64,000 bases of DNA from Tubulanus polymorphus. Taxonomy: Eukaryota > Animalia > Nemertea. The position numbers and the translations under genes are program-made. Shown in pieces: positions 2,432 through 56,045 of this stretch. The notes beneath the pieces are model-generated. The model saw only the letters and a program-made list of their open reading frames with translations. It had not been told where the DNA came from and did no database searches. How positions within the stretch are numbered: position 1 is the stretch's first letter; each line of letters opens with the position of its first letter. The stretch covers positions 7,948,962 through 8,012,961 of the forward strand of contig NC_134034.1 in the NCBI RefSeq assembly GCF_964204645.1, written 5' to 3'.

Positions 2432-5400
2432 TACGATTACGATTACGATTTTAATTACACTCCAACCATTTCCATGGTATATATATAGTTTATTAAAGTG
2501 TCATCTTTACAAGTAAAGCCAGCCTATAAAAGGCTTACAAGACACAAATTTTCATACAATTATAACATATTCATGGAATGTTACCGTTACGTCGTAAGGA
2601 CGCCCTTTCAATATAGTTACAAACATATTCAATTATTTTGCAATTCGATAGAATTTGAATTAATACCTCGGTACTTGAAAGGGAAGTTATATCAAGAGTT
2701 AGTACATCTTCAATTTTTTGGTATAGGTCATTTCTTAAATCATGATATGCGTTACACTCACAAAGAAAATGTAGTTCGGATTATATTTCATTTTTATTAC
2801 ACATACTACAGACACGCAATACTAGGGGCAAACTTCTATACCTTCCTAATTCTATATTAAGAGGGTAAGTACCTTTTCTCATTCTAGCGATTAAAGAGCG
2901 TCTACTCAGGTTGAATTTGACATAGTCTTCAGTACCAAACGTGTTTTTAAGTAATCTATAAGTTCTTAGTTTCTCCTGGGAACCTATGTTTCTCGACCAG
3001 GCAATGGAATAATTTCTGAACATAATTTTCTTTGCATCTAAAAGAACCTTTTTATAGCCATGTCGTTTAAAGAGCCTAATTCGGGATGTAAATAAAAATA
3101 TTCTATCTGACATTCCGTGAAAATCAACTTAACATGATTACACCAGTTTTCATAACCACTTATCGAGTTTTGATAGTCATGTAAAAATATTTTTTTGGTT
3201 ATCCTATCATCAAGCATGTTACATAGACGAAACCATAATCTTAACGTTTCTACTCGATGCCTAATAAATACAGGAGTCCAGCCCATATCACCTTCGATAC
3301 TCAATAACGACGAGTGTTTTCCTGTTCCCAGGAATGAGCGCATGGCTCTAAATTGAACTTTTTTACAGCACTCATAGTTCTTGAGTCCCCATACAGCACT
3401 TCCATAATCCATAATTGGGACCGTAGTTGCATTATATATTTTACTGTAGGTTTTATGTGAAAGTCCACTTGAATTAAAATGTTTACATAGGAGGCTACCT
3501 AGTGCTTTGCTAGAAGCTTTAGCAAGGGCATCAGCCGTATAACGAAAATCTAAATATTCATTGAATTCTACACCTAAGTATCTATATACATTTACAATTT
3601 CAATAGTTTTGTCCTCCAGTTTGAATTGAAAGTTGGTAAGTGGAGCAGATTTCTTTCTAAAGTGCATTATTTTGGACTTTTCAAGATTTACAGTCAGTTT
3701 CCATTTTTTGCACCATTCCATTAGTTCATTTATAAGTACTTGTAATGAGTGTTCATCTTCTGCTATTAGGACAATATCATCGGCAAAAAGAAGGATTGAC
3801 AACCTAATACCATTGACCTACACGCCAAGTCCGAGAGATTTAATTTTTAAGGCTAACTCATCTAGGTACAACGAAAAAAGTGTTGGTGATAGGCAGTCCC
3901 CTGTCTTACACCTGATGTACTCGGAAAACTATCTGACAGGTGGCCATTTATTCTGACCCGTACATCATTATTCATATACATAGTTTTAATAATTCTAAGA
4001 AAATTTCTATTCATACCGATTTCATAAAGTTTATACAGAAGGTACGAGCGATCCACACAATCGAATGCTTTAGCAAAATCGACATAACAAACAAACGTAG
4101 GACGATTTTCCAAACGCCTGTTTTTTACAATGGATATAAGGCTATAGATATGATCAAGGCATGATCGCCCTTTCCGAAATCCATTTTGTTCGTCGCTCAA
4201 TTTACCGTTCAAATTTACATAAAGCGTCAGACGATTATTCAAAATTGAACTGAAAAGCTTTCCCACGTTTGAGTTAAGACTAATACCTCTATCTCCAAGT
4301 GGTGTAAGTTCGTCTTTACCTTGTTTATGAATAGGATGCAAAATACTCTGGTTCCATATTGATGGGACTTTACCGGCACTGAGAATCTTATTGAACAGGA
4401 TGCACAGAATTTTACAAAGATTAGGGCTTTTTAACACTTCATTTGGAATCTTATCCAGCCCAGTTGCTTTATTGGTTTTTAATTTGTTCGTGGCTTGAAT
4501 AACTTCGGCTTGTGTTATTGGATTATTCAGAGTATAATTTCTATCATAAATTTCTTGCATATTATCAATATGATCCCAAAAGGAGTTTATTTCTTGTTCA
4601 TCCGAATTAAAGGGCTTATCATTAGCAACTGGATTGTATAATTTTTCAAAATCATATTTCCATTTTTTCATGATATCGTTTTTGTTTTCTGAAATTGTGC
4701 CGTTTTCCGTTCTTACTGCTCTTATAGCGTTATCTCTATTCCCCGGCCCTAGCTTTTAAATATGGTTCCAAAATTCGTTTGGGTTACTGGTCTGCAAGTG
4801 GTCTATTTCATTCAATTTTTGAAGCATAAATTGACGTTTGGAATTTCGATAATGCTTGTCAAATTGCTTTTGAATAGTTTTAAACTCATTTCGAAGTTTT
4901 GATTTTTCACTCGAATTGCCTTTACATTTAATGAATCGTTTTTCTGATCTGCCTGTACACATGATTTTCGAATTTGAGAGAGTTCGTCGTTCCACCACGG
5001 CTTTTTACTTCGAAATGTGTCTTTTTTGTTGAACGATATCTTAACATCTCTATGCGGTAGGATCTCGTTCATTTCGTCAAGGCAGTAGTTTGTGAACTTT
5101 GTGTAAGTATTGTCAATTTCCTCATGAGTGGCCATTGTGTCCGTTAATCGATCGCATATACGGATTAGTGCTGATCGCCTGCGTTCGTTTGCGAGGAAGT
5201 CTATTGGAACTCCATTTACGAGATATCTTCTGTCGACAATTACATCATCGACAAACGAGTTTTTCGCAGCTTTACTGGGCGGGTTCGTTTTATACATAAT
5301 AGCGTAATCGGAGACAGTTAATGTGAATTTTATAAACGAGTGATCCGGTTTACGACACTCCGGATCATACCGAGCAACGTCGATTAATTCATTTACAGTT

Positions 5401-7925
5401 AATACCGCAAAATCACTTGTTTTTTCGAAATCAGCGCTTGGCACCAGAAAGTAGTCAACTACCGAGCGACCTTTGCTAGATATACAAGTAAAATTATCGT
5501 CATTCGTATTTCTCCCATTAAGTATGCACTTATTTGCATCCTGAACGGAATCGATCAAGTATCCACCGAACTTATTTGCACATTCATCGATAGATAAACG
5601 AGGAGGAATGTATTTATCGGGAGTGTCGATTTTATTACCAATTCGACCGTTAAAATCGCCACCTATGACAACTGGTTCATTATTCCAGTGCATGTATAAC
5701 TGTGATAATAAATTATCGTAAAACTCTTGGGCTGAATTTCCACGGGATGATCTTTCTGGCGGCAGATATACAGTGCAAATAAGAATTGTTAGCGTTTCAT
5801 CCAGAATCGATGTTAGTCTTACCCACAATATTCCGTCATATGAGCGTTCGATTATTTCAGCGCGGTAATTTTGTAGCACTTTGTTTTTTATAAGGATTCC
5901 TACACCCCCAGAGCCACGCACCGCACGTTTATGAATGTCTTTTCTATTGAAGCCTAGCCACTGGTAACCGGGAACTGATAAACCATTTCCATGCAATAGA
6001 TGTGATTCACAGATGACAGTAACATCACAGTTAATTTTCAAAACAGCGTTTTCACGTAGTGTACTGGCGTCATTTTTATTTCTGTCAGCCCATCTATTTA
6101 CATTCCATTGACCAAACGTAAGCTTAGCATAAGACTGGCTTATTTCCTATTCTCCAGGGTCAATATGGTTTAAAACACCTGTGTCCATGTCCAGGATGTT
6201 TCTGATTTCTGGGATACCCTCAGTAGTTGGTTTTTTCTTTTTCTGTGGTTTTGCTTTGGAGTTTTTTGCTCAGGGGAGTCGTCAGTGACAGAGTTATCCG
6301 ATGGTACCCTGGCCCGTTTTCCGTTTACACTCTCCCGCGTGTCAGATTCTCGATGGATCTGTTCTGATCCTTGTTTGGGATCACTCTTCGTCTTTTCTAT
6401 TAGCCGACCATTGCTGGATATTCTGAGATTGTCACCTCCTGGGACCATAGAAAGTAACTTGTGTGTAGTTAATTCATGTAGCCTCTCAATGTGGAACTTG
6501 CTTCCACGAATCCAAACCTCACCAAAGTCTTGGTCACCCTTCAGTTTTGTTTTGGCTCTTAGAATATTGACCTTGATGTCTCTGTCTTTGACGGCCAGTT
6601 TCACCAACGGTGGCTTTCCTATCTTTCTTGCTTTAAGCCTAATACATTTGATGACTTCTGGTTTGGGATTTAATTGGAGCCTGGATATCATTTTAGAGCA
6701 CAATTCATTTAGGTTTTCGTCGGGGGTATGTGGTAGGATGTAGATGATCAGACAGTTTTCATGATTTTCAAGTGGATCTCTTGGGTTATCAGCGTTGAAT
6801 TTACATTGTAAGTTGATGCATAGGTCTTCCAGTTGTTTTACAGAGGCCTGCGATTCTTTCAGTTGTTTCTCTAGTTCCATTATTTTTTCCCACATGTTTT
6901 CAGTTCTGTGAAATGTTTTCCACTGTCGCTTTTTACGTGTGTGACTGACTTCTCGTTGAATTCAACCGTGGTAATCAAATCACCAATTTTTTCCTCGTTT
7001 AACTTAACTGTTGACTTCAGCGCTGATATCTCGGTTTTATTTGTCAAAACCTTTTCACAGAGCTCTCTTAATTTTGAGGAGTCTTGTTGTTGGCCTTCTT
7101 TTAGCTCGTTAATGGAAATTTTTAAATCGCCAATTGCCTTGCCCATAAAGTCTTCAAAGTTTGTTTTGCCGCCCATGGTTGACTTATTGTAGTAGTCCCA
7201 CGCTCAATATCAGATTACATTACCATTGACCATACGTACAGCTACTGGTAGCGGTTCCCACGAAAGTCATTCAACCGAGACGTGCGTCCGTGTGTGTTTG
7301 GACGTATATGCGACGTATATGCGAGAACAGAAATAAATTATCTATATTGACCGAGATACAGAATTTTAAACATACAGTTTCAGCGTCAAAGTTTTAAGAC
7401 CAGAATAATGACGTCTTGAGCGGAACAAATTCATAGAATCGCCATCCACTTACAGTTTCGCTATCTTTCCGAGTTCCGATGAATTTAGCAACTATATATC
7501 GGAGCGTCGTTCAACGCTGTCTGCGCTGTCCGCCATGTTTATGTACAGTTCTGTACAGTAGTGTATATGGAGGAAAACTATTACACATGTATATACAAAT
7601 ATTTACAAAACAACACTGAAGTGATTAAAATTTAGAGAATGAAAACGTAACAAAATATATATACATCAACTATTTACAATACTATATATACTATTGGAGG
7701 GATCTATATACATCTAAGCCGGTCTTAATGAATTTAGCTAATTTGACCGTTGGGTTTTTCAGAATATCAAGGGTATTAAAGGTATTCAAATTCAAATAGT
7801 TTTTGCGGGGTTCGTTAAGTAAGGTACAGTCAAACAGAAAATGGGATTCGTCACCTAAAGTATTACAAGTGGGGCATATTATATCGGCCCTGTCTAAATG
7901 AAGGTTTAAAAATTTGTTCACAGGT
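2432..7925 (-). mobile_element. 3' fragment of a second LINE family (2432-2482 + 7563-7925), split by the full-length LINE
   Basis: (ATCGTA)n tail at 2432-2449 and CPTCNTLGDESHFLFDC at 7691-7921. The rejoined halves match the uninterrupted copy at 9554-9940. Confidence 0.8.
2483..7562 (-). mobile_element. Full-length degraded non-LTR retrotransposon (RTE-X-like): ORF1 ~7176-6170, ORF2 APE-RT ~6170-2700
   Basis: APE motifs (ESHL, GGDFN, VDYF, PDH), RT motifs (DFAKAFD, GVRQG, LLFADD, YRYLG), C-terminal LNIELGRY..RVCSMC. AATAAA at 2489-2494 (minus strand); GTATAT direct repeats at 2477-2482 and 7563-7568. Clade assigned by motif only. Confidence 0.88.
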
Positions 7926-19300: not shown

Positions 19301-22300
19301 GTTCTACATGAAATTACATTTATTAGGACTATAGACCAAAACAGTTATTTCAAATATATAATAGACACTGGATTAACAGAGTATCGTTTTTACGCTACCA
19401 TCAACTCTGATGCCCCTGTGATAGAATTTAATTCAAAATGGCGGCACTGATAGATTGTTTGTCGGGTCGCTCTACAAACTCGGACCATTTTTAGTATAAT
19501 TTGGAAGCTATGAAAAACTTCATTACAAGTGGTATAAAGATCAGAGATCGTCAAATTAAAGCGTGCAAAGTTGACGAATTGATTGATATAACGAACATAA
19601 CTATTAAAGACGCACCGGTTGAGCTTTCGGATATGTTCATTATTAATCAGCTACAAAAGTATGGCAACGTAGTAACCGGTTCACTGCGAAGAGGCAAAAT
19701 TAAAGACACGGAAATTTTAACGGATCTATCTATGCGAAACTGTCAAACGTAAAAAAACATTATACCCGTGGAGACTAAGTTTGGAAGATTTGAAGTAAGA
19801 CTTTTTTGCGACAATAACAAAACACAGTGCAAACATTGCGGTGACACTGATCACCCATATTTCAGACGTTTACTGAAAACTAGAAAACTTTGTTTCAAGT
19901 GTTAATCAGCTGATCATATGGCTAATGATTGTCTGTATGGCATAATTTGTTACCATTGTCGTGAAGATGGTAAAAAAAAATCTGAATGCCGAAAAATTCG
20001 AAAAATTCAATAACGATTGAATTACGATATAGACGAAAATAGTATCAGTGATCACCAGTCAGACACAATTCAAAACTCAGCGCAAGTTGAATTTACAACA
20101 ACGCCTCTTGTTGACAATCCGACCGTGGATTACCTGATCATAGGAGACTCTAACTGCAGGCGCCTTATATTCACTGACCTGCCCAGTATTATTCATGTTG
20201 ACAGTTTGCCAGGCGCAACCGCTCATGGTATTGATCAACAATTACTCAAGCTTAACCCGAAATTAGACAGTAGCCTTGTAAAACGTGTTATTTGTCATTT
20301 AGGAACAAATGACATTTTTTTAAACAAGGACGATAATGATCAAACTATTCTCGACTTATCCAAAGCTACAAATACACTACTTACTAGATTTCCAAATTCT
20401 GAAATTCATGTATCCAGTATCCTCCCCCGTAGAGGACGGAGCAAGACAATAATGGCACTTAATGAATCTGCCACGGCCATCAATAACTATTTAAAAAAAC
20501 TGTGTAATAGCGACGAAAGACTATTTTATATCGACAATGATGAAAAGTTCCGCCCTAACCAAGCTGGTGTTACACGAGCCCTCTTCGATTCCATGGATAA
20601 GAGTGGAGTTCATTTAGGAATAGACGGAGCCAAAGAACTGACAGCCACATTTCTGAATGCATTTGCTTTACTGTCGGGTAGAAACAAGAAAAGATCTCAT
20701 AGTCAGACGTCACCTGCTATCATCAGTCCCAGTTGTAGCCAACTGACTAAAAAGGACAGGATTATTTCTGGTGACTCACCTGTTACTGCAGTTTGAGGTC
20801 TATTCTTATCTATCAGTCTATGACTAACAATCCATCTAATAATTGTCAGTATTTTGATGAAAATAACTTTGAATTCGATAAAAGTCAATTTTCAATTTGC
20901 ACTTTTAATATCCGAAGATGCAACAAAAATTTTGATTCTTTCACTGACTACATCAATTGTATAAAATCCGATTTTTCTATCATAGGACTTACTGAGACTT
21001 GGAGTAATGATAATGCCCATAACAATAATCTTTATAAACTACCTGGCTACAATAGTATTTTTAAAAGCCGCTCGAATGATGTAAAGGGTGGTGGCGTTGC
21101 CCTTTATTTCAAAGATGATTACCAATCTATAATACGCCCAGATCTTGCTGGTAAGAATGAGGTATTTGAATCTCTCTTTTTTGAAATTATTTGTAAGAGT
21201 AAAAAGAATAAGATTATTGGTATTATATACAGACCTCCGGGGCTAAATCTACTTTTTTAGTTGAATTTAATTTACTATTAGACAAGCTAAATAGGGAAAG
21301 AAAAGATTGTTATTTGATTGGTGATTTTAACATTGATTTACTTCAATCAGAAGTTCATAAACCTACTGAATCATTTCTAGATAATCTGATAGCTTCATCC
21401 TTTTACCCACTTATTGATAAACCAACCAGGGTGACCAATAATTCATCCAGTCTAATTGACAATATTTTTTGTAATAATGTTGAAAATGTATTTAACTCGG
21501 GCATATTATGTACAGATATTTCTGATCATTTTCCAATTTTCACAATGTTTGATCAACGTATACGTGTCTGCAATAATTGTACTTACTCAACTAGAAACTT
21601 TAGTGATCATAATATTGATAGATTCTATAGGAGCCTAATAGCGTGTGATTGGTCGGCTATTTATAATGAAAATGACCCACAAAGGTCTTATACTGTATTT
21701 ATTTCTAAATTTACTCATTTATATGATACATGCTTTCCATTTATCAAACGCATGAACGCAAAAACCAATAAGTCTTAACCCTGGTTAACTACGGGCTTGT
21801 TAAACTCTATTAAATATAAAAATCACTTATATAGGAAAACACTTTATAATTCAGATATTGCTTTTAAATCCCGTTATTTAGAATATAAGCGATTATTATC
21901 ACGTTTATTAAAAACTGTTGAAAAAGGTTACTATGATACTCAGTTATTTGGTGTAAAGAATGATATGAAAGCTACGTGGAAAATCTTAACGACAGTTATT
22001 GGAAGTAACTCCGTCAAAGAACAACAATTAGCTTCCTTTAAGCTAAACAACGTAACTGTCAGTGGTAGTTTAAACATTGCAAATGAGTTTAATACTTTTT
22101 TTGTTAACATCGGACATCGTTTAGAAAATATGATCCCCGAGTCTGAAAAACATTTCAGTTTTTAGCTCGGCTGTGACCGAAGGTCAGCGGAGCTGATGGG
22201 TTAGGGGGTTCGTCGTCGTCCGTCCGTCCGTCCGTCCGTCCGTCCGTCCGGTGTTCGGTGTCCGGCGTCAACTTTTTCTTTATATCCCTACTAGTCCTAC

Positions 22301-50356: not shown

Positions 50357-53060
50357 GTAATGACCGCTACTTTAGCTCAGAATCTTGTGTGAACGCCACT
50401 ACAAATGATTTGGAATCGTCTTCAATTAAAGACACTTGGTGACTAACTACTGTCTCCAATGGAATACCGGCTAGGCTACTGAGGGAAGCGAGGATTCAGT
50501 GATTATCCGTTAGGATCGCTAGTGGCACTTGGTTACTTTGCTTCAATTTCTTGTACATTTCAATTGAATTCCAATTACTAAATCAATTTTCAGTGAAATC
50601 AATACCATACACTGAATGAGCAAGGGAATCTTATATCTATTCGATGACTCATTTGATAATTATCGGATTTTGAAGCCAAAGAAATCAAGTTCAAACTTCA
50701 TTAAAAATGAACTGATTTTCACCGCGAATAACCCATACACGGTCTCTACCTGGGCAAGCGGTCCTTCGAGAGCTGCACCTACTATTGTATGTTTTTATCG
50801 ATGTGGAGGTCTGTTCCACTACTGAAAAAGCACCACCAGTCACTAATCATATACACAGGATTCAACCATGATTTAGAAAATTCCAATATTTTGGGAAAAC
50901 ATGAATTGATGTTTGGATAATTTGAACAAGAGGGTTTGTCTCACACTAAACATGGAGGTAATAGGGTTGCCACAAAATGTTCAGCATGGTATGTTTCAAC
51001 GTGTAAAAATGGTAGTAAGAATGGATGAAAATTGAATCAAATCCCAAAACATCTATGCCAATAAGTGCAAGTGATTTTGATGTGGTTCTTTCCAAATATT
51101 CAGACCTTGAAAATAGGAATAATTTTTGGAACTTTAGAACACTTACTCATTAAATTCATTTGATAATCAAAGCTAGAATTTACAGTGCCCAACACTATCC
51201 TCTTAATTCCACTGATTTGAAATGCACAAGGTTAGTGTATGTTTTTTTTAAATCTGCATTTTGTAATAATCACAAATTGTTCTCCATGAATTTGGCTATA
51301 CTCATGATACTTATGATATTGAATTTACTTATTGAAATAAAGAACAATAGATAAAAGTTAAGTTTTATTTGGCGGTCAAAACATGCTCTTCTTTCCTCAG
51401 TTAGAGACCGAGGGGTGTTCAATTGTGAAGATTTATAAATTGAAAGATATTTAAGTAAATCTTTGCTTGCATTCTTCCAGATATCATTCTCTTAAGATCA
51501 ACACTGGTGCGAGACTTTCTGAAACATTGTATACCTTTGTGAATTTCAGTGCTATAAACAACGCAGGTAACAGAGGCAGGTAGCATTGTTGGCCTCTGTT
51601 GTTGTAATTGGAAACATAGAACATAAAACAATCACCACTTCCTCACCCGAAATCTGTGGCGGGTAAATACTCTACAGTCAGTCAGTCAGTCACTGTTAAA
51701 TTCAAAAGTGTTTTGTTTTCTTTTACGTTTATGACCAATATTTCTCCTTTTCCGTAATAAAATGCATGCTGTTCTTGTTATACACATTTCTGTCTGACAA
51801 AGTAGAGGAAACAGTGTGTTACTATTTTTATGAATGATTTTTGTATAATACAATTAACCATAGATTTGATTTATGAATTAAAATTATTTTAGAGTTGCAA
51901 TTTTTCAATTTAATTGTAATATGATTAATGTTATATCACAAACAATGCACGCAGACACCACCAGTTAGTATCATATGAATTTTTTGGATTTTAAGCAAGA
52001 TAAAAGTATGTCCTTGAATAGTTGCTATTTTCATGCCATCTGTATTGATAGTCTTAGTATATATAGCTTTAATGATAGAGTATTACTCGAGAGCGGGAAT
52101 ATGTGGAAGAACCTTCCTCGAAAATGCAGGCATGGGAATCATTGGCCTCCTGTGGCTGATTTTAGTTCATTCCTGATTCATTCCTAGATACAAATTTGCA
52201 AAATATGGATCTGTTAGTGTAAGTTTGATCGTCAGACTCGCTTGTGCACCACAAATGTATAGTTCTCTTGTTTACACTTAACGTTTATCAGCGAATGAGC
52301 TAGCAGTGTTAGGTGATCATTTTTAGAATGGTTCTGGACTTATTATTACTTAACATAGAAAATTCATAAATGACAGGATACCTCTCAATTCCAACCTTGT
52401 TCAGGTTTTTAGTAACATTAGTATTTTGTTTGAGATAGATTTCTGGTTATCTTGGGCAGCTAAATTACAAAATGCTGCAAAATTCCCTAGGCCGAGCTTA
52501 TTACTATTCAAATGGAGCAAATTTAAATGACATTGTTTCCAGAGGAAAGGTCCTTTCACTCTGCAACTGATCATATATTTATATACAAATCATTCATTTT
52601 GAAAAATTTACATGAGTTTTTTCGCGAAAATCTGAACGCAAAAATATCAGTTTTAAAAAGGCAATCAGTAAGCAATTTCTCCTCTATGATTGGCTTAGCC
52701 GCAGAAATCAGCAGGTGTTCACGTGAACCAACGGTTTCATCTACTGTTTTACTTCTGGGTTTTATATTAAGATTAATATTGTATTTCAAAGATCAATTTC
52801 TGTGAAATCGTAAGTTGATTTGGGTTTTGGGAGGGATATTTTTATGTCGGAAAAAATAGCTTTTTCTCAAATTCGATGGATAACCTTGATTAGCCATGTA
52901 CTCCCAAATTTTATTCTTAAAAAACCAAATCCAATGCAATATTATTTTATTTAACAAACATCAAATCAAATTTAATTCTATTCCGCATTTAAATCGATAA
53001 GTCCATGGGAAAAGATAGATTTCAGGAATTTGTCCCTGCCATCTCTATCTGTGCTACTTA

Positions 53061-53466
53061 TGTAACAGGAAGAAACATCTGTCCTTCCCGAGACTCTCGA
53101 TGCCTGGCGTCCAAGGCAGATGCTCTACCGCTGAGCCAGAAGGAATATTCCCGCTAGCTGAGCTAGTAGAAGCGCTTTTATACACCCTGTCACACTCACC
53201 CCCTTCTTGGAAAGACACGTCGTCGTGTTGTGATTCACTTAGGTGATTGACATTACCACTCATGACGACTGTGGGACGACATGAACTTGGACCCAGGGAT
53301 ATCACAGAGACGGACGAGCCCCCAAATGTAACAGGAAGAAACATCTGTCCTTCCCGAGATTCGAACTCTTGATGCCTGGCGTCCAAGGCAGACGCTCTAC
53401 CGCTGAGCCAAAGGAAATATTCCCGCTAGCTGAGCTAGTAAGGACGCTTTTATACACCCTGTCACA
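53061..53466 (-). mobile_element. TRIM (miniature LTR retrotransposon) with tRNA-like LTRs, Helenus-type
   Basis: Two TG...CA LTRs (53327-53466 and 53061-53194), PBS TGGGGGCTCGTCCG (53311-53324), PPT AAGAAGGGGGTGAG (53195-53208), CTTA TSD (53057-53060 and 53467-53470), A/B boxes in the LTR. Confidence 0.92.
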
Positions 53467-53999
53467 CTTATGAAACATGATTATGTAAATTATATTGAGG
53501 GGGGAGAGTATTTTGACAAATATAACCTTCTGATTGCATCACTTGCCATTTATGAAAAGCTGACGCCTTGGGGCTCTTGTTTGTAGGTCTTTTTCTGATG
53601 TTTATAGGTTTTGATTCCATTCCCCCCTTAACCTAATAACGATAGCAAATAGTTACACCATTATCATGCCCATAATTGCATAGTTTTGTCATAGGTCTAG
53701 AACACAATTATTTCATTTGGCCCTGATACAGAGAAAGTTTTCATGATCGTTCAGGCCTCAAGTAGATAGTTGTAATGATTTTGGTTGATTTTGATCCTGT
53801 ATTAACATGACACTATTTTTCAGTTAAATCTACCAACTTGATTAAGATTTACTGTAAAAGTATGAGACATTTCTAATTGCTAATGGACTATTGATATAAT
53901 GGTCCAAAAAGTTATTTCATTGTACTTTTGCTCATTAGTTATGTGGTCGATGAGAAAGGGCTCAGCAATCCCGTAGTGATACATACCCACTTACATTAG

Positions 54000-54826: not shown

Positions 54827-55469
54827 CAGGGATGAAAATCTTCCGACCATAGACGGATTGCCAACCTTTTCTAAAATTTTCTTTATTCCTGAGATCAGTT
54901 CAAATCGCCTCAATCGCGCCTGTCACATTGGAGCCCTCTGTAGTTAGGAGTGCTCCTTAAGACGGTTTTTGGAGGTAGTTAGCACAACTGTGGAGTCGGA
55001 GAAACCAATATGGTTTATATGAGACCATCATGGTCTCATTCAAAAAGTGACTCTTAATTCAGGCCCTATTAACATTTTGACCAAAAGAAAGTGAGTTTTT
55101 TGGCTAAATATTACTGATTTTTATTCCCACTAAAGATTCTTTTTTTTAAAGACATTTTCCGACTTTTTCAATATGGGCCGTTTTAATGTTATTATAATAA
55201 CATAATATTATGTTATTATAATAACATAATATTATGTTATTATCAGATATCCTGTTTTATTTTAGCCTGGTTTTTCCCATTTATAGTTCCCTTGAAATAC
55301 TACCAGCTATTTGTTGGTGCCGCAAGTTTTCATGTGGTAAACCTGCACATGTACCTGCGCACCCAGTCTAGTGTGGCTGGGGTTGGTGCCGTGGCTGAGT
55401 GTAGCGATACCGTCGGGTTAAAATCCCTGCCAAGGGAGGATAGCTAAGTCAGGCGTGGTGACATTCTAT

Positions 55470-56045
55470 TTTTCTCAGCATGTGCGATGCGCTTTTCTCT
55501 CATTGGTGCTCTACACACTTCAAATTACATGTGATTTCTTTTAAACTTGGTATGTGTAATGAAGTCAGTCTATGGATGAAACCTTTTGAAATTAGCTTTC
55601 TTGCTCTTCCAATGGTGAATATGGCCACTACGGCGGACATCTTGAATCACTTGTAAGCACTCTACATACGCCAAATAATGTGCGATTTCTTTTAAGCTCG
55701 CTATGTGTAATGAAGTCGGTCCATGGATGAAACTTATCGATAATGAGCTTTCTCGCTCTTCCAATATGGCCGCTATGGCGGACATCTTGAATTTTTTGTT
55801 AATGCTCTACACACGTCAAATAATGTGTGCGGTCTTTTAAAATTGGTATGAGTAATGTGGTAGGTCCATGGATGAAAACTGTCAAAAATTCCCATTCAGC
55901 CAATATGGCCACAATGTACGGACATTTTGAATCTCTTGTTCCTGTTGACACATGTAGAATTGATTACGGTTAAGTAACATGAATCAGTTCATACATTATC
56001 TTATAAAATAGAGATATTTATGGTGGTGGCTAGGTCAACCTTCTT
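55470..56045 (+). repeat. Degenerate repeat with ~3 x 150-bp tandem units, probably HINE-like
   Basis: ctctacac...tgtaatgaagtcggtccatggatgaaac...aatatggcc..ggacatcttgaa recurs three times. Confidence 0.6.

Follow-up and report, generated by a model that had tools for sequence, protein, structure and literature searches.

The window analysed here is a stretch of 64,000 nucleotides from the nemertean Tubulanus polymorphus (assembly GCF_964204645.1, contig NC_134034.1, positions 7,948,962 to 8,012,961 of the forward strand), and this study concerns a short repeat element that lies within it. Coordinates are window positions unless a genomic locus is named, and the element is read on the minus strand throughout. 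At 53061-53466 (-) there is a 406-bp element composed of a long terminal repeat (LTR) of 140 bp, an interior of 132 bp and a second LTR of 134 bp, which is the layout of a terminal-repeat retrotransposon in miniature (TRIM). An earlier note on this sequence had read it as an LTR-bearing TRIM with a transfer RNA (tRNA)-like part in its LTRs. This structural reading is supported, and the target-site duplication (TSD), the TG...CA repeats, the primer-binding site (PBS) and the polypurine tract (PPT) named there, together with the coordinates and the lengths of element and interior, are all confirmed.

The element is flanked on its 3' side (53057-53060) and on its 5' side (53467-53470) by the same 4 bp, CTTA on the plus strand and TAAG on the minus strand. 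Insertion was the work of an integrase that duplicates 4 bp of its target. The 5' LTR (53327-53466) starts with TGTGACAGG and ends with CCTGTTACA; the 3' LTR (53061-53194) likewise runs from TG to CA, and the termini form 9-nt imperfect inverted ends. Compared as repeats, the two LTRs match over 104 nt at 91% identity and over a further 37 nt at 97%, with a 6-bp gap between the two blocks. The interior (53195-53326) is non-coding, and is 89-95% conserved in the other full-length copies described below. It opens with the PBS TGGGGGCTCGTCCG (53311-53324), which lies 2 nt (TT) past the 5' LTR and is complementary to the 3' end of tRNA-Pro plus CCA, and it closes with the PPT AAGAAGGGGGTGAG (53195-53208), which abuts the 3' LTR. 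About 100 nt of non-coding sequence separate the two, and no open reading frame (ORF) of note is present in the 406-bp element.

TRIMs with a tRNA-derived sequence in their LTRs, a PBS and a PPT have been defined as Helenus, or TRIMp3 (Kojima, 2024; PMC10886601). In animals they make a 4-bp TSD, and their total length is 311-1263 bp (PMC10886601). Their LTRs contain a box A of the form TRGCY..YGG and a box B of the GGTTC type (PMC10886601). The earlier note had described Helenus as tRNA-bearing, with 4-bp TSDs in animals, in agreement with the publication (Kojima, 2024; PMC10886601). At 406 bp the window element has the TRIM layout, a PBS, a PPT and a 4-bp TSD, and its LTRs are tRNA-like, with an A box in both and a B box in the 5' LTR.

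The family in the genome

The LTR finds 37 matches in the animal's own 268-Mb assembly, which correspond to about 35 loci of the same LTR. The window repeat is thus far beyond chance, since these loci exist and since 16 of the 21 family copies that have both ends present carry an exact 4-bp TSD. The census was made by orienting every copy and reading its flanks. The 16 duplications are TAAG, TATC, CTTG, AATG, TTCA, CCAG, TAAG, TATA, TCTA, CTGA, TATA, TTAA, TACT, CAAA, TACC and TTTA, and the five copies without an exact TSD belong to the more diverged ones.

When the parts of the element were compared by BLAST with the fetched loci, at least five LTR-interior-LTR copies were found, including the window copy, along with about 25 solo or truncated LTRs. 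One of the full-length copies, at C9:12501940-12502352, is 412 bp long, and another, on C4, is a 680-bp array of the form LTR-interior-LTR-interior-LTR. A third (L005, C2:8921011-8921767) measures 756 bp overall owing to an insertion in its 5' LTR. This insertion is about 340 bp long and has LTR positions 56-65 duplicated on both sides, which suggests that another element, one making a TSD of about 10 bp, inserted there later. A further locus, L045, was considered as a tandem element and rejected, its repeats being unrelated to the family LTR.

The solo units are tailless and stop right at TG...CA. The earlier note had named what would count against it, namely other copies without the LTR-PBS-PPT-LTR layout or without a constant 4-bp TSD. 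In the genome the layout is kept, solo LTRs exist, and the TSDs are of 4 bp.

Three near-identical and diverged variants of the LTR are found on C6 (L021-L023, at 18675733, 18710486 and 18790618). They are about 84% identical to the window LTR, and their A box is destroyed. No second LTR was found within 1.5 kb of any of them. They probably lie in a segmental duplication, since they sit 35-80 kb apart.

The LTR pair of the window copy differs by nine transitions, no transversions and one 6-bp deletion, a Kimura two-parameter distance of 0.072, and the pairs of other family elements give 0.014-0.052. Mean divergence between family copies is 9.5%. The 6-bp deletion, of TTCGAA, removes the B-box core from the 3' LTR. 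To judge from its sequence, the window copy is old and inactive and can no longer act as a source, because its LTRs are about 7% apart and the B box has been lost from the 3' LTR. No pair of LTRs in the family is identical, so the LTR divergences do not suggest current activity of the family as a whole.

tRNA-like sequence and promoter motifs

Both window LTRs align to the full length of the Rfam tRNA model. The segment in the 5' LTR (53349-53417) scores 19.0 bits (E 1.4, model span 1-71), and that in the 3' LTR (53080-53145), which keeps the A box, scores 17.8 bits (E 2.9). The gathering cut-off of the model is 29 bits. The best family copy in the genome reaches 24.5 bits, and real tRNA genes of the same genome score 65-72 bits. 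In the alignment to the model the D arm pairs perfectly, a bulge interrupts the anticodon stem, TGG stands at the anticodon position, and the T stem has three pairs. ARAGORN called no tRNA in the window and none in 38 loci of the genome. Free-energy folding of the tRNA-like part yields no cloverleaf, with z = 0.18 relative to shuffles, and whole LTRs give z of about -2. The cloverleaf-like fold that the earlier note described is therefore weak. A functional tRNA gene would score above the cut-off and have an intact cloverleaf, and the LTR sequence has neither. Because the scores are below the cut-off, ARAGORN makes no call and no cloverleaf forms, the segment is best described as a decayed tRNA relic that keeps putative promoter motifs, and is not a tRNA gene.

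The A box TGGCTCAGCGG (53400-53410) and the B box GAGTTCGAATC (53358-53368) of the 5' LTR lie exactly where they had been noted, as does the TATAAAA at 53448-53454. In this copy the B box is present in the 5' LTR alone, the 3' LTR having lost it. An alignment of 29 family LTRs was used to count how often these motifs survive. The A-box motif is intact in 23 of them and the B-box core in 21; the sequence of box B is AGTTCGAATC, which departs from GGTTC by a single base. TATAAAA is present in three only, these being both LTRs of the window copy and one solo LTR (C10:2111800), and is therefore a variant of a copy or subfamily and not a feature of the family. Most of the other 26 aligned LTRs have TATAACA at this position, and a few have further changes. 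The occurrence of the variant in both window LTRs fits their origin from one RNA template.

Two further blocks precede or overlap the tRNA-like part. A hairpin of the form CTAGC-TCA-GCTAG (53426-53438) lies upstream of it and is among the least variable blocks of the LTR (0.04). A palindrome, GGGAATATTTCC in the window copy and GGGAATATTCCC in most copies (53413-53424), shares positions with the 5' strand of the acceptor stem in the tRNA-like part.

The published Helenus LTRs that were checked have a run of four to six T, resembling a terminator of RNA polymerase III (Pol III), right after the tRNA-like part (PMC10886601). In the present family nearly all of the 29 LTRs read TTTCTT there, with TTTCTA in three copies of the L021 type and five T in one rearranged copy. 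No run of four or more T is found on the sense strand of any full-length family copy.

A candidate helper, proposed mechanism and rival explanations

At least 13 genomic loci read GGTTCGA(T/C)TCCCGGACGAGCCC, in which a T loop leads into an acceptor strand. The same TCCCGGACGAGCCC end is found in tRNA-Pro-AGG of Aplysia (Kojima Fig. S2C; PMC10886601). All 14 nt of the PBS can pair with this genomic tRNA-Pro 3' end plus CCA, in line with the tRNA-Pro PBS named in the earlier note. It is worth adding that the L021-L023 LTRs are followed by TTCGGCGCCTGTCCGGG in place of the tRNA-Pro PBS, a sequence with 2 mismatches in 16 positions to the complement of another, putative tRNA 3' end in the genome. 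Besides ...CCCGGACGAGCCC (the tRNA-Pro type), at least 15 genomic loci have a T loop followed by ...CCCGGACAGGCCC, which may be a second tRNA 3' end able to prime this variant PBS.

The pattern formed by the LTR end and the tRNA-Pro PBS occurs at 14 genomic sites, of which seven lie outside the TRIM copies. Four of the seven are followed by Ty3/Gypsy genes, arranged as PNMA-like gag, protease, reverse transcriptase, RNase H, and then H2C2 and rve integrase domains. One of the Gypsy families has more in common with the TRIM than its primer. Its main copy is at C7:13404107-13410288, and relatives are found at C5:12833927 and C7:10780586. Its LTR starts with TGTCACAGGGTGT, compared with TGTGACAGGGTGT in the TRIM, and ends with CCGTGACA, compared with CCTGTTACA; the spacer before its PBS is TT or TA, the same as in the TRIM; and its PPT is GAAGTGGGGGAGGA, compared with AAGAAGGGGGTGAG. 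The 90-nt junctions of PPT and LTR from the two elements give a local alignment score of 39, against 17.1 +/- 3.3 for shuffled sequences, none of 2000 shuffles reaching 39, and the partner junction ranks first among 7,948 real 90-nt windows. When the parts of the TRIM were compared by BLAST with all Gypsy loci, the PBS alone was in common; the likeness of the junctions appears only in targeted local alignment. These observations support the suggestion of the earlier note that a Gypsy-type element mobilises the TRIM, in that Ty3/Gypsy elements with the same tRNA-Pro PBS exist in the genome and one family shares LTR termini and PPT junction with it. The C7 family, with its PNMA-like gag, is the best candidate for the helper, and we put the odds that it is the helper at about even.

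A second tRNA-Pro Gypsy family, at C6:12224571-12231319 (-) (L047 and L033), was considered as the partner and rejected, its LTR ends being unrelated and its apparent TSD being of 5 bp. It is a 6.75-kb Ty3/Gypsy element with 220-bp LTRs that are 97.7% identical, a tRNA-Pro PBS and a PNMA-like gag, and its flanks suggest the TSD TAGAT. For a tRNA-Pro Gypsy family on C4, the 3' LTR was not found.

On the basis of these observations, we propose that the element at 53061-53466 (-) is an old and inactive copy of a Helenus/TRIMp3-type TRIM, whose family would have been transcribed by Pol III and mobilised by Ty3/Gypsy proteins, and we give this reading a probability of about 85%. The A and B boxes would act as an internal Pol III promoter, with transcription starting inside the 5' LTR near the beginning of the tRNA-like part. 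With no sense-strand run of at least four T to halt it in any full-length copy, Pol III would read past the interior and 3' LTR and terminate in the flanking DNA, for the window copy at a point 48 nt downstream. A read-through RNA of this kind would keep the repeated region at both ends, as is needed for strand transfer. Proteins of an autonomous Ty3/Gypsy element would then carry out its packaging, its reverse transcription from a tRNA-Pro primer and the integration of the complementary DNA.

Several points weigh against this proposal. The use of Pol III is a prediction from the sequence, here as for the published Helenus elements (PMC10886601). Only three good pairs remain in the T stem, and the fold of the tRNA-like part is no stabler than that of shuffled sequences. 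TTTCTT stands where the published Helenus LTRs that were checked have a T4-T6 run, so that a terminator-like signal is lacking there. In all four Gypsy loci that were examined, three of which belong to the candidate family, pol is split over several ORFs or incomplete, and no intact helper was seen. The link to the candidate partner rests on about 60 nt, and the next-best background windows score 35 compared with its 39. The sole complete partner copy is flanked by ATGA and ATCA, a TSD that matches at three of four positions; a TSD of 4 bp is nevertheless likely for this family.

The rival explanation with the most in its favour is that the element is an ordinary TRIM driven by RNA polymerase II (Pol II), in which the tRNA-like block is the remnant of an old insertion of a short interspersed nuclear element (SINE) into the LTR, or has some other role, such as directing cuts by RNase P and RNase Z that define the RNA ends, or serving as a packaging or dimerisation signal. 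A TATA-like motif (mostly TATAACA, TATAAAA in the window copy) precedes the start of the tRNA-like part by about 35-40 nt, the LTR has no Pol III terminator, and a type-2 Pol III promoter does not account for the conserved upstream hairpin module. However, the closest published relative, Helenus-1_LiLo, has by eye no TATA-like motif, and the A and B boxes are the very blocks that Helenus families of different phyla have in common (Kojima Fig. 2; PMC10886601). The acceptor and T stems are, moreover, too degraded for confident recognition by RNase P or RNase Z. We regard a Pol II-driven TRIM as unlikely.

The remaining two explanations carry far less weight. That the candidate Gypsy family recently gave rise to the element by internal deletion, and that the element is not part of an independent and long-lived Helenus lineage, might be suspected from the LTR termini, PBS and PPT junction that the two have in common; yet there is no likeness outside these short functional sites, and the body of the LTR resembles the published Helenus LTRs of nemerteans and bivalves instead, which makes such a derivation very improbable. 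It could also be supposed that a tRNA-derived SINE was duplicated in tandem by chance, and that what look like solo LTRs are copies of this SINE dispersed by a long interspersed nuclear element (LINE): the repeat unit is of SINE size and has A and B boxes, and LINEs exist in the window. The spread of such a SINE by a LINE is ruled out by the solo units, which end at TG...CA without an A-rich or LINE-derived tail and have a fixed 4-bp TSD. The same interior, PBS and PPT recur at independent loci, and the LTR-interior-LTR-interior-LTR arrangement of one locus is typical of TRIMs. No free-standing SINE sharing this tRNA-like head turned up, all genome matches being LTRs or LTR fragments that reach the LTR end. 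The layout shared with other loci and the TSD census refute the duplicated-SINE explanation, to which we give practically no credence.

Elsewhere in the window, pieces of a LINE (non-LTR) element lie at 3041-6041 (-), where an ORF for an endonuclease of the apurinic/apyrimidinic (APE) type and two reverse-transcriptase ORF fragments stand in a row with broken frames. An open frame of 259 aa at 20017-20793 (+) contains a GDSL/SGNH lipase-esterase domain, and its nearest protein-atlas clusters are animal proteins. A tandem repeat with a 145-bp unit (2.5 copies, 77% matches) is found at 55507-55877, and a perfect 24-bp AT-rich tandem at 55186-55243.

Comparison with Helenus and other known systems

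Helenus is known from six animal phyla, including Nemertea (Lineus longissimus and Notospermus geniculatus), and is present in pteriomorph bivalves (PMC10886601). It forms tandem arrays and solo LTRs, has tRNA-Pro among its bivalve primers, and is probably mobilised by Gypsy elements (PMC10886601). Among the papers in the library searched, none but Kojima (2024) uses the TRIMp3 concept. The published sequences were compared with the present family by eye, supplemented by a motif-pattern search.

The closest resemblance is to two nemertean elements, Helenus-1_LiLo of Lineus longissimus (LTR, interior and total of 137, 133 and 407 bp) and Helenus-1_NGe of Notospermus geniculatus. Together they have LTRs of 137-138 bp, interiors of 123-133 bp and totals of 399-407 bp, compared with 140, 132 and 406 bp here, and they too make a 4-bp TSD. 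Their LTRs have the same order of blocks as the window LTR, from the TGT... start through to the ...CTGTTACA end. The common order is an extended hairpin TTCC-TA-CTAGC...GCTAG-NG-GGAA, a GGGAA..TTCCC palindrome, an A-box region TTT-RGCTCAG-(Y)CGGTAGAG, and a GTTCRA B box. The end of the PPT is also similar (CTTTCC..GAA.AGGGGG.G). The interiors of the two published elements open with the PBS TTTGGCGCCCAACG, of the tRNA-Lys type, whereas that of the window family opens with TTTGGGGGCTCGTCC, for tRNA-Pro, and the interiors are otherwise unrelated; their LTRs have a T5 run after the tRNA-like part, where the window family has TTTCTT. Helenus-1_LiLo is represented by 226 LTRs, compared with about 35 LTR loci in the window family. 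A pattern that fits the motif forms of both Helenus-1_LiLo and the window family has 11 matches in the T. polymorphus genome, all of the window-family form; the form of Helenus-1_LiLo, with A after TTT and TC before GGTAGAG, was not found in the genome by this pattern.

Judged by these sequence comparisons, the window element is a new family of the known Helenus group, with an LTR resembling that of Helenus-1_LiLo and a primer site switched to tRNA-Pro. The earlier note had suggested a possible new family, which is right at the level of the family; the group itself was already described in 2024.

A bivalve element combines the features differently. Helenus-1_TeGr of the ark clam Tegillarca granosa has the same interior start TTTGGGGGCTCGTCC, that is, a TT spacer and a tRNA-Pro PBS, as well as a 4-bp TSD and the LTR end CCTGTTACA, all as in the window family. 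It differs in belonging to another phylum, in having another LTR body without the upstream hairpin module, and in its terminator-like T6 run. The hairpin module is seen by eye in Helenus-2_NGe, -4_PeMa, -5_PeMa and -3_SaGl, among which are scallop and oyster families. Its stem shows apparently compensatory changes, CCAG/CTGG in Helenus-2_NGe and GGGTTAACCC in Helenus-3_SaGl, again by eye. We therefore speculate, and only tentatively, that the module (the CTAGC/GCTAG stem plus GGGAA..TTCCC) might be a functional non-tRNA element of one ancient lophotrochozoan Helenus lineage, or of a lineage transferred between phyla, as opposed to one born repeatedly, and that this might also be the first animal Helenus with a Gypsy helper pinned down by LTR ends, PPT and PBS.

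The family adds one genome and one family to the LTR elements that seemingly borrow a Pol III promoter, and changes no general picture. Within a ribbon-worm-like lineage it shows a switch of primer from the tRNA-Lys type to tRNA-Pro. The candidate Gypsy partner and the terminator-less LTR provide handles on how a Pol III transcript could serve as a retroviral-type genome. For annotation, it is worth noting that LTRs of this kind can be mistaken for tRNA pseudogenes or SINEs. SINE2 elements are likewise short and non-coding, have a tRNA-derived head with A and B boxes, and rely on the reverse transcriptase of another element; they differ in having no LTR, PBS or PPT and in having a LINE-derived or A-rich tail and a variable TSD, none of which is true of the window family.

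Murine leukaemia virus uses the same tRNA-Pro primer, as the earlier note stated and in agreement with Kojima's figure, and the first 14 nt of its 18-nt PBS are identical; no relation to the TRIM was found beyond the primer tRNA. An Rfam search of the region gave no match to 5S ribosomal RNA. Cassandra of plants and Ajax of nemerteans are, like the window family, TRIMs with an internal Pol III promoter derived from a small RNA in their LTRs, as the TRIMp3 concept has it. In Cassandra and Ajax this sequence is derived from 5S ribosomal RNA and the TSD is 5 bp, whereas in the window family it is derived from a tRNA and the TSD is 4 bp.

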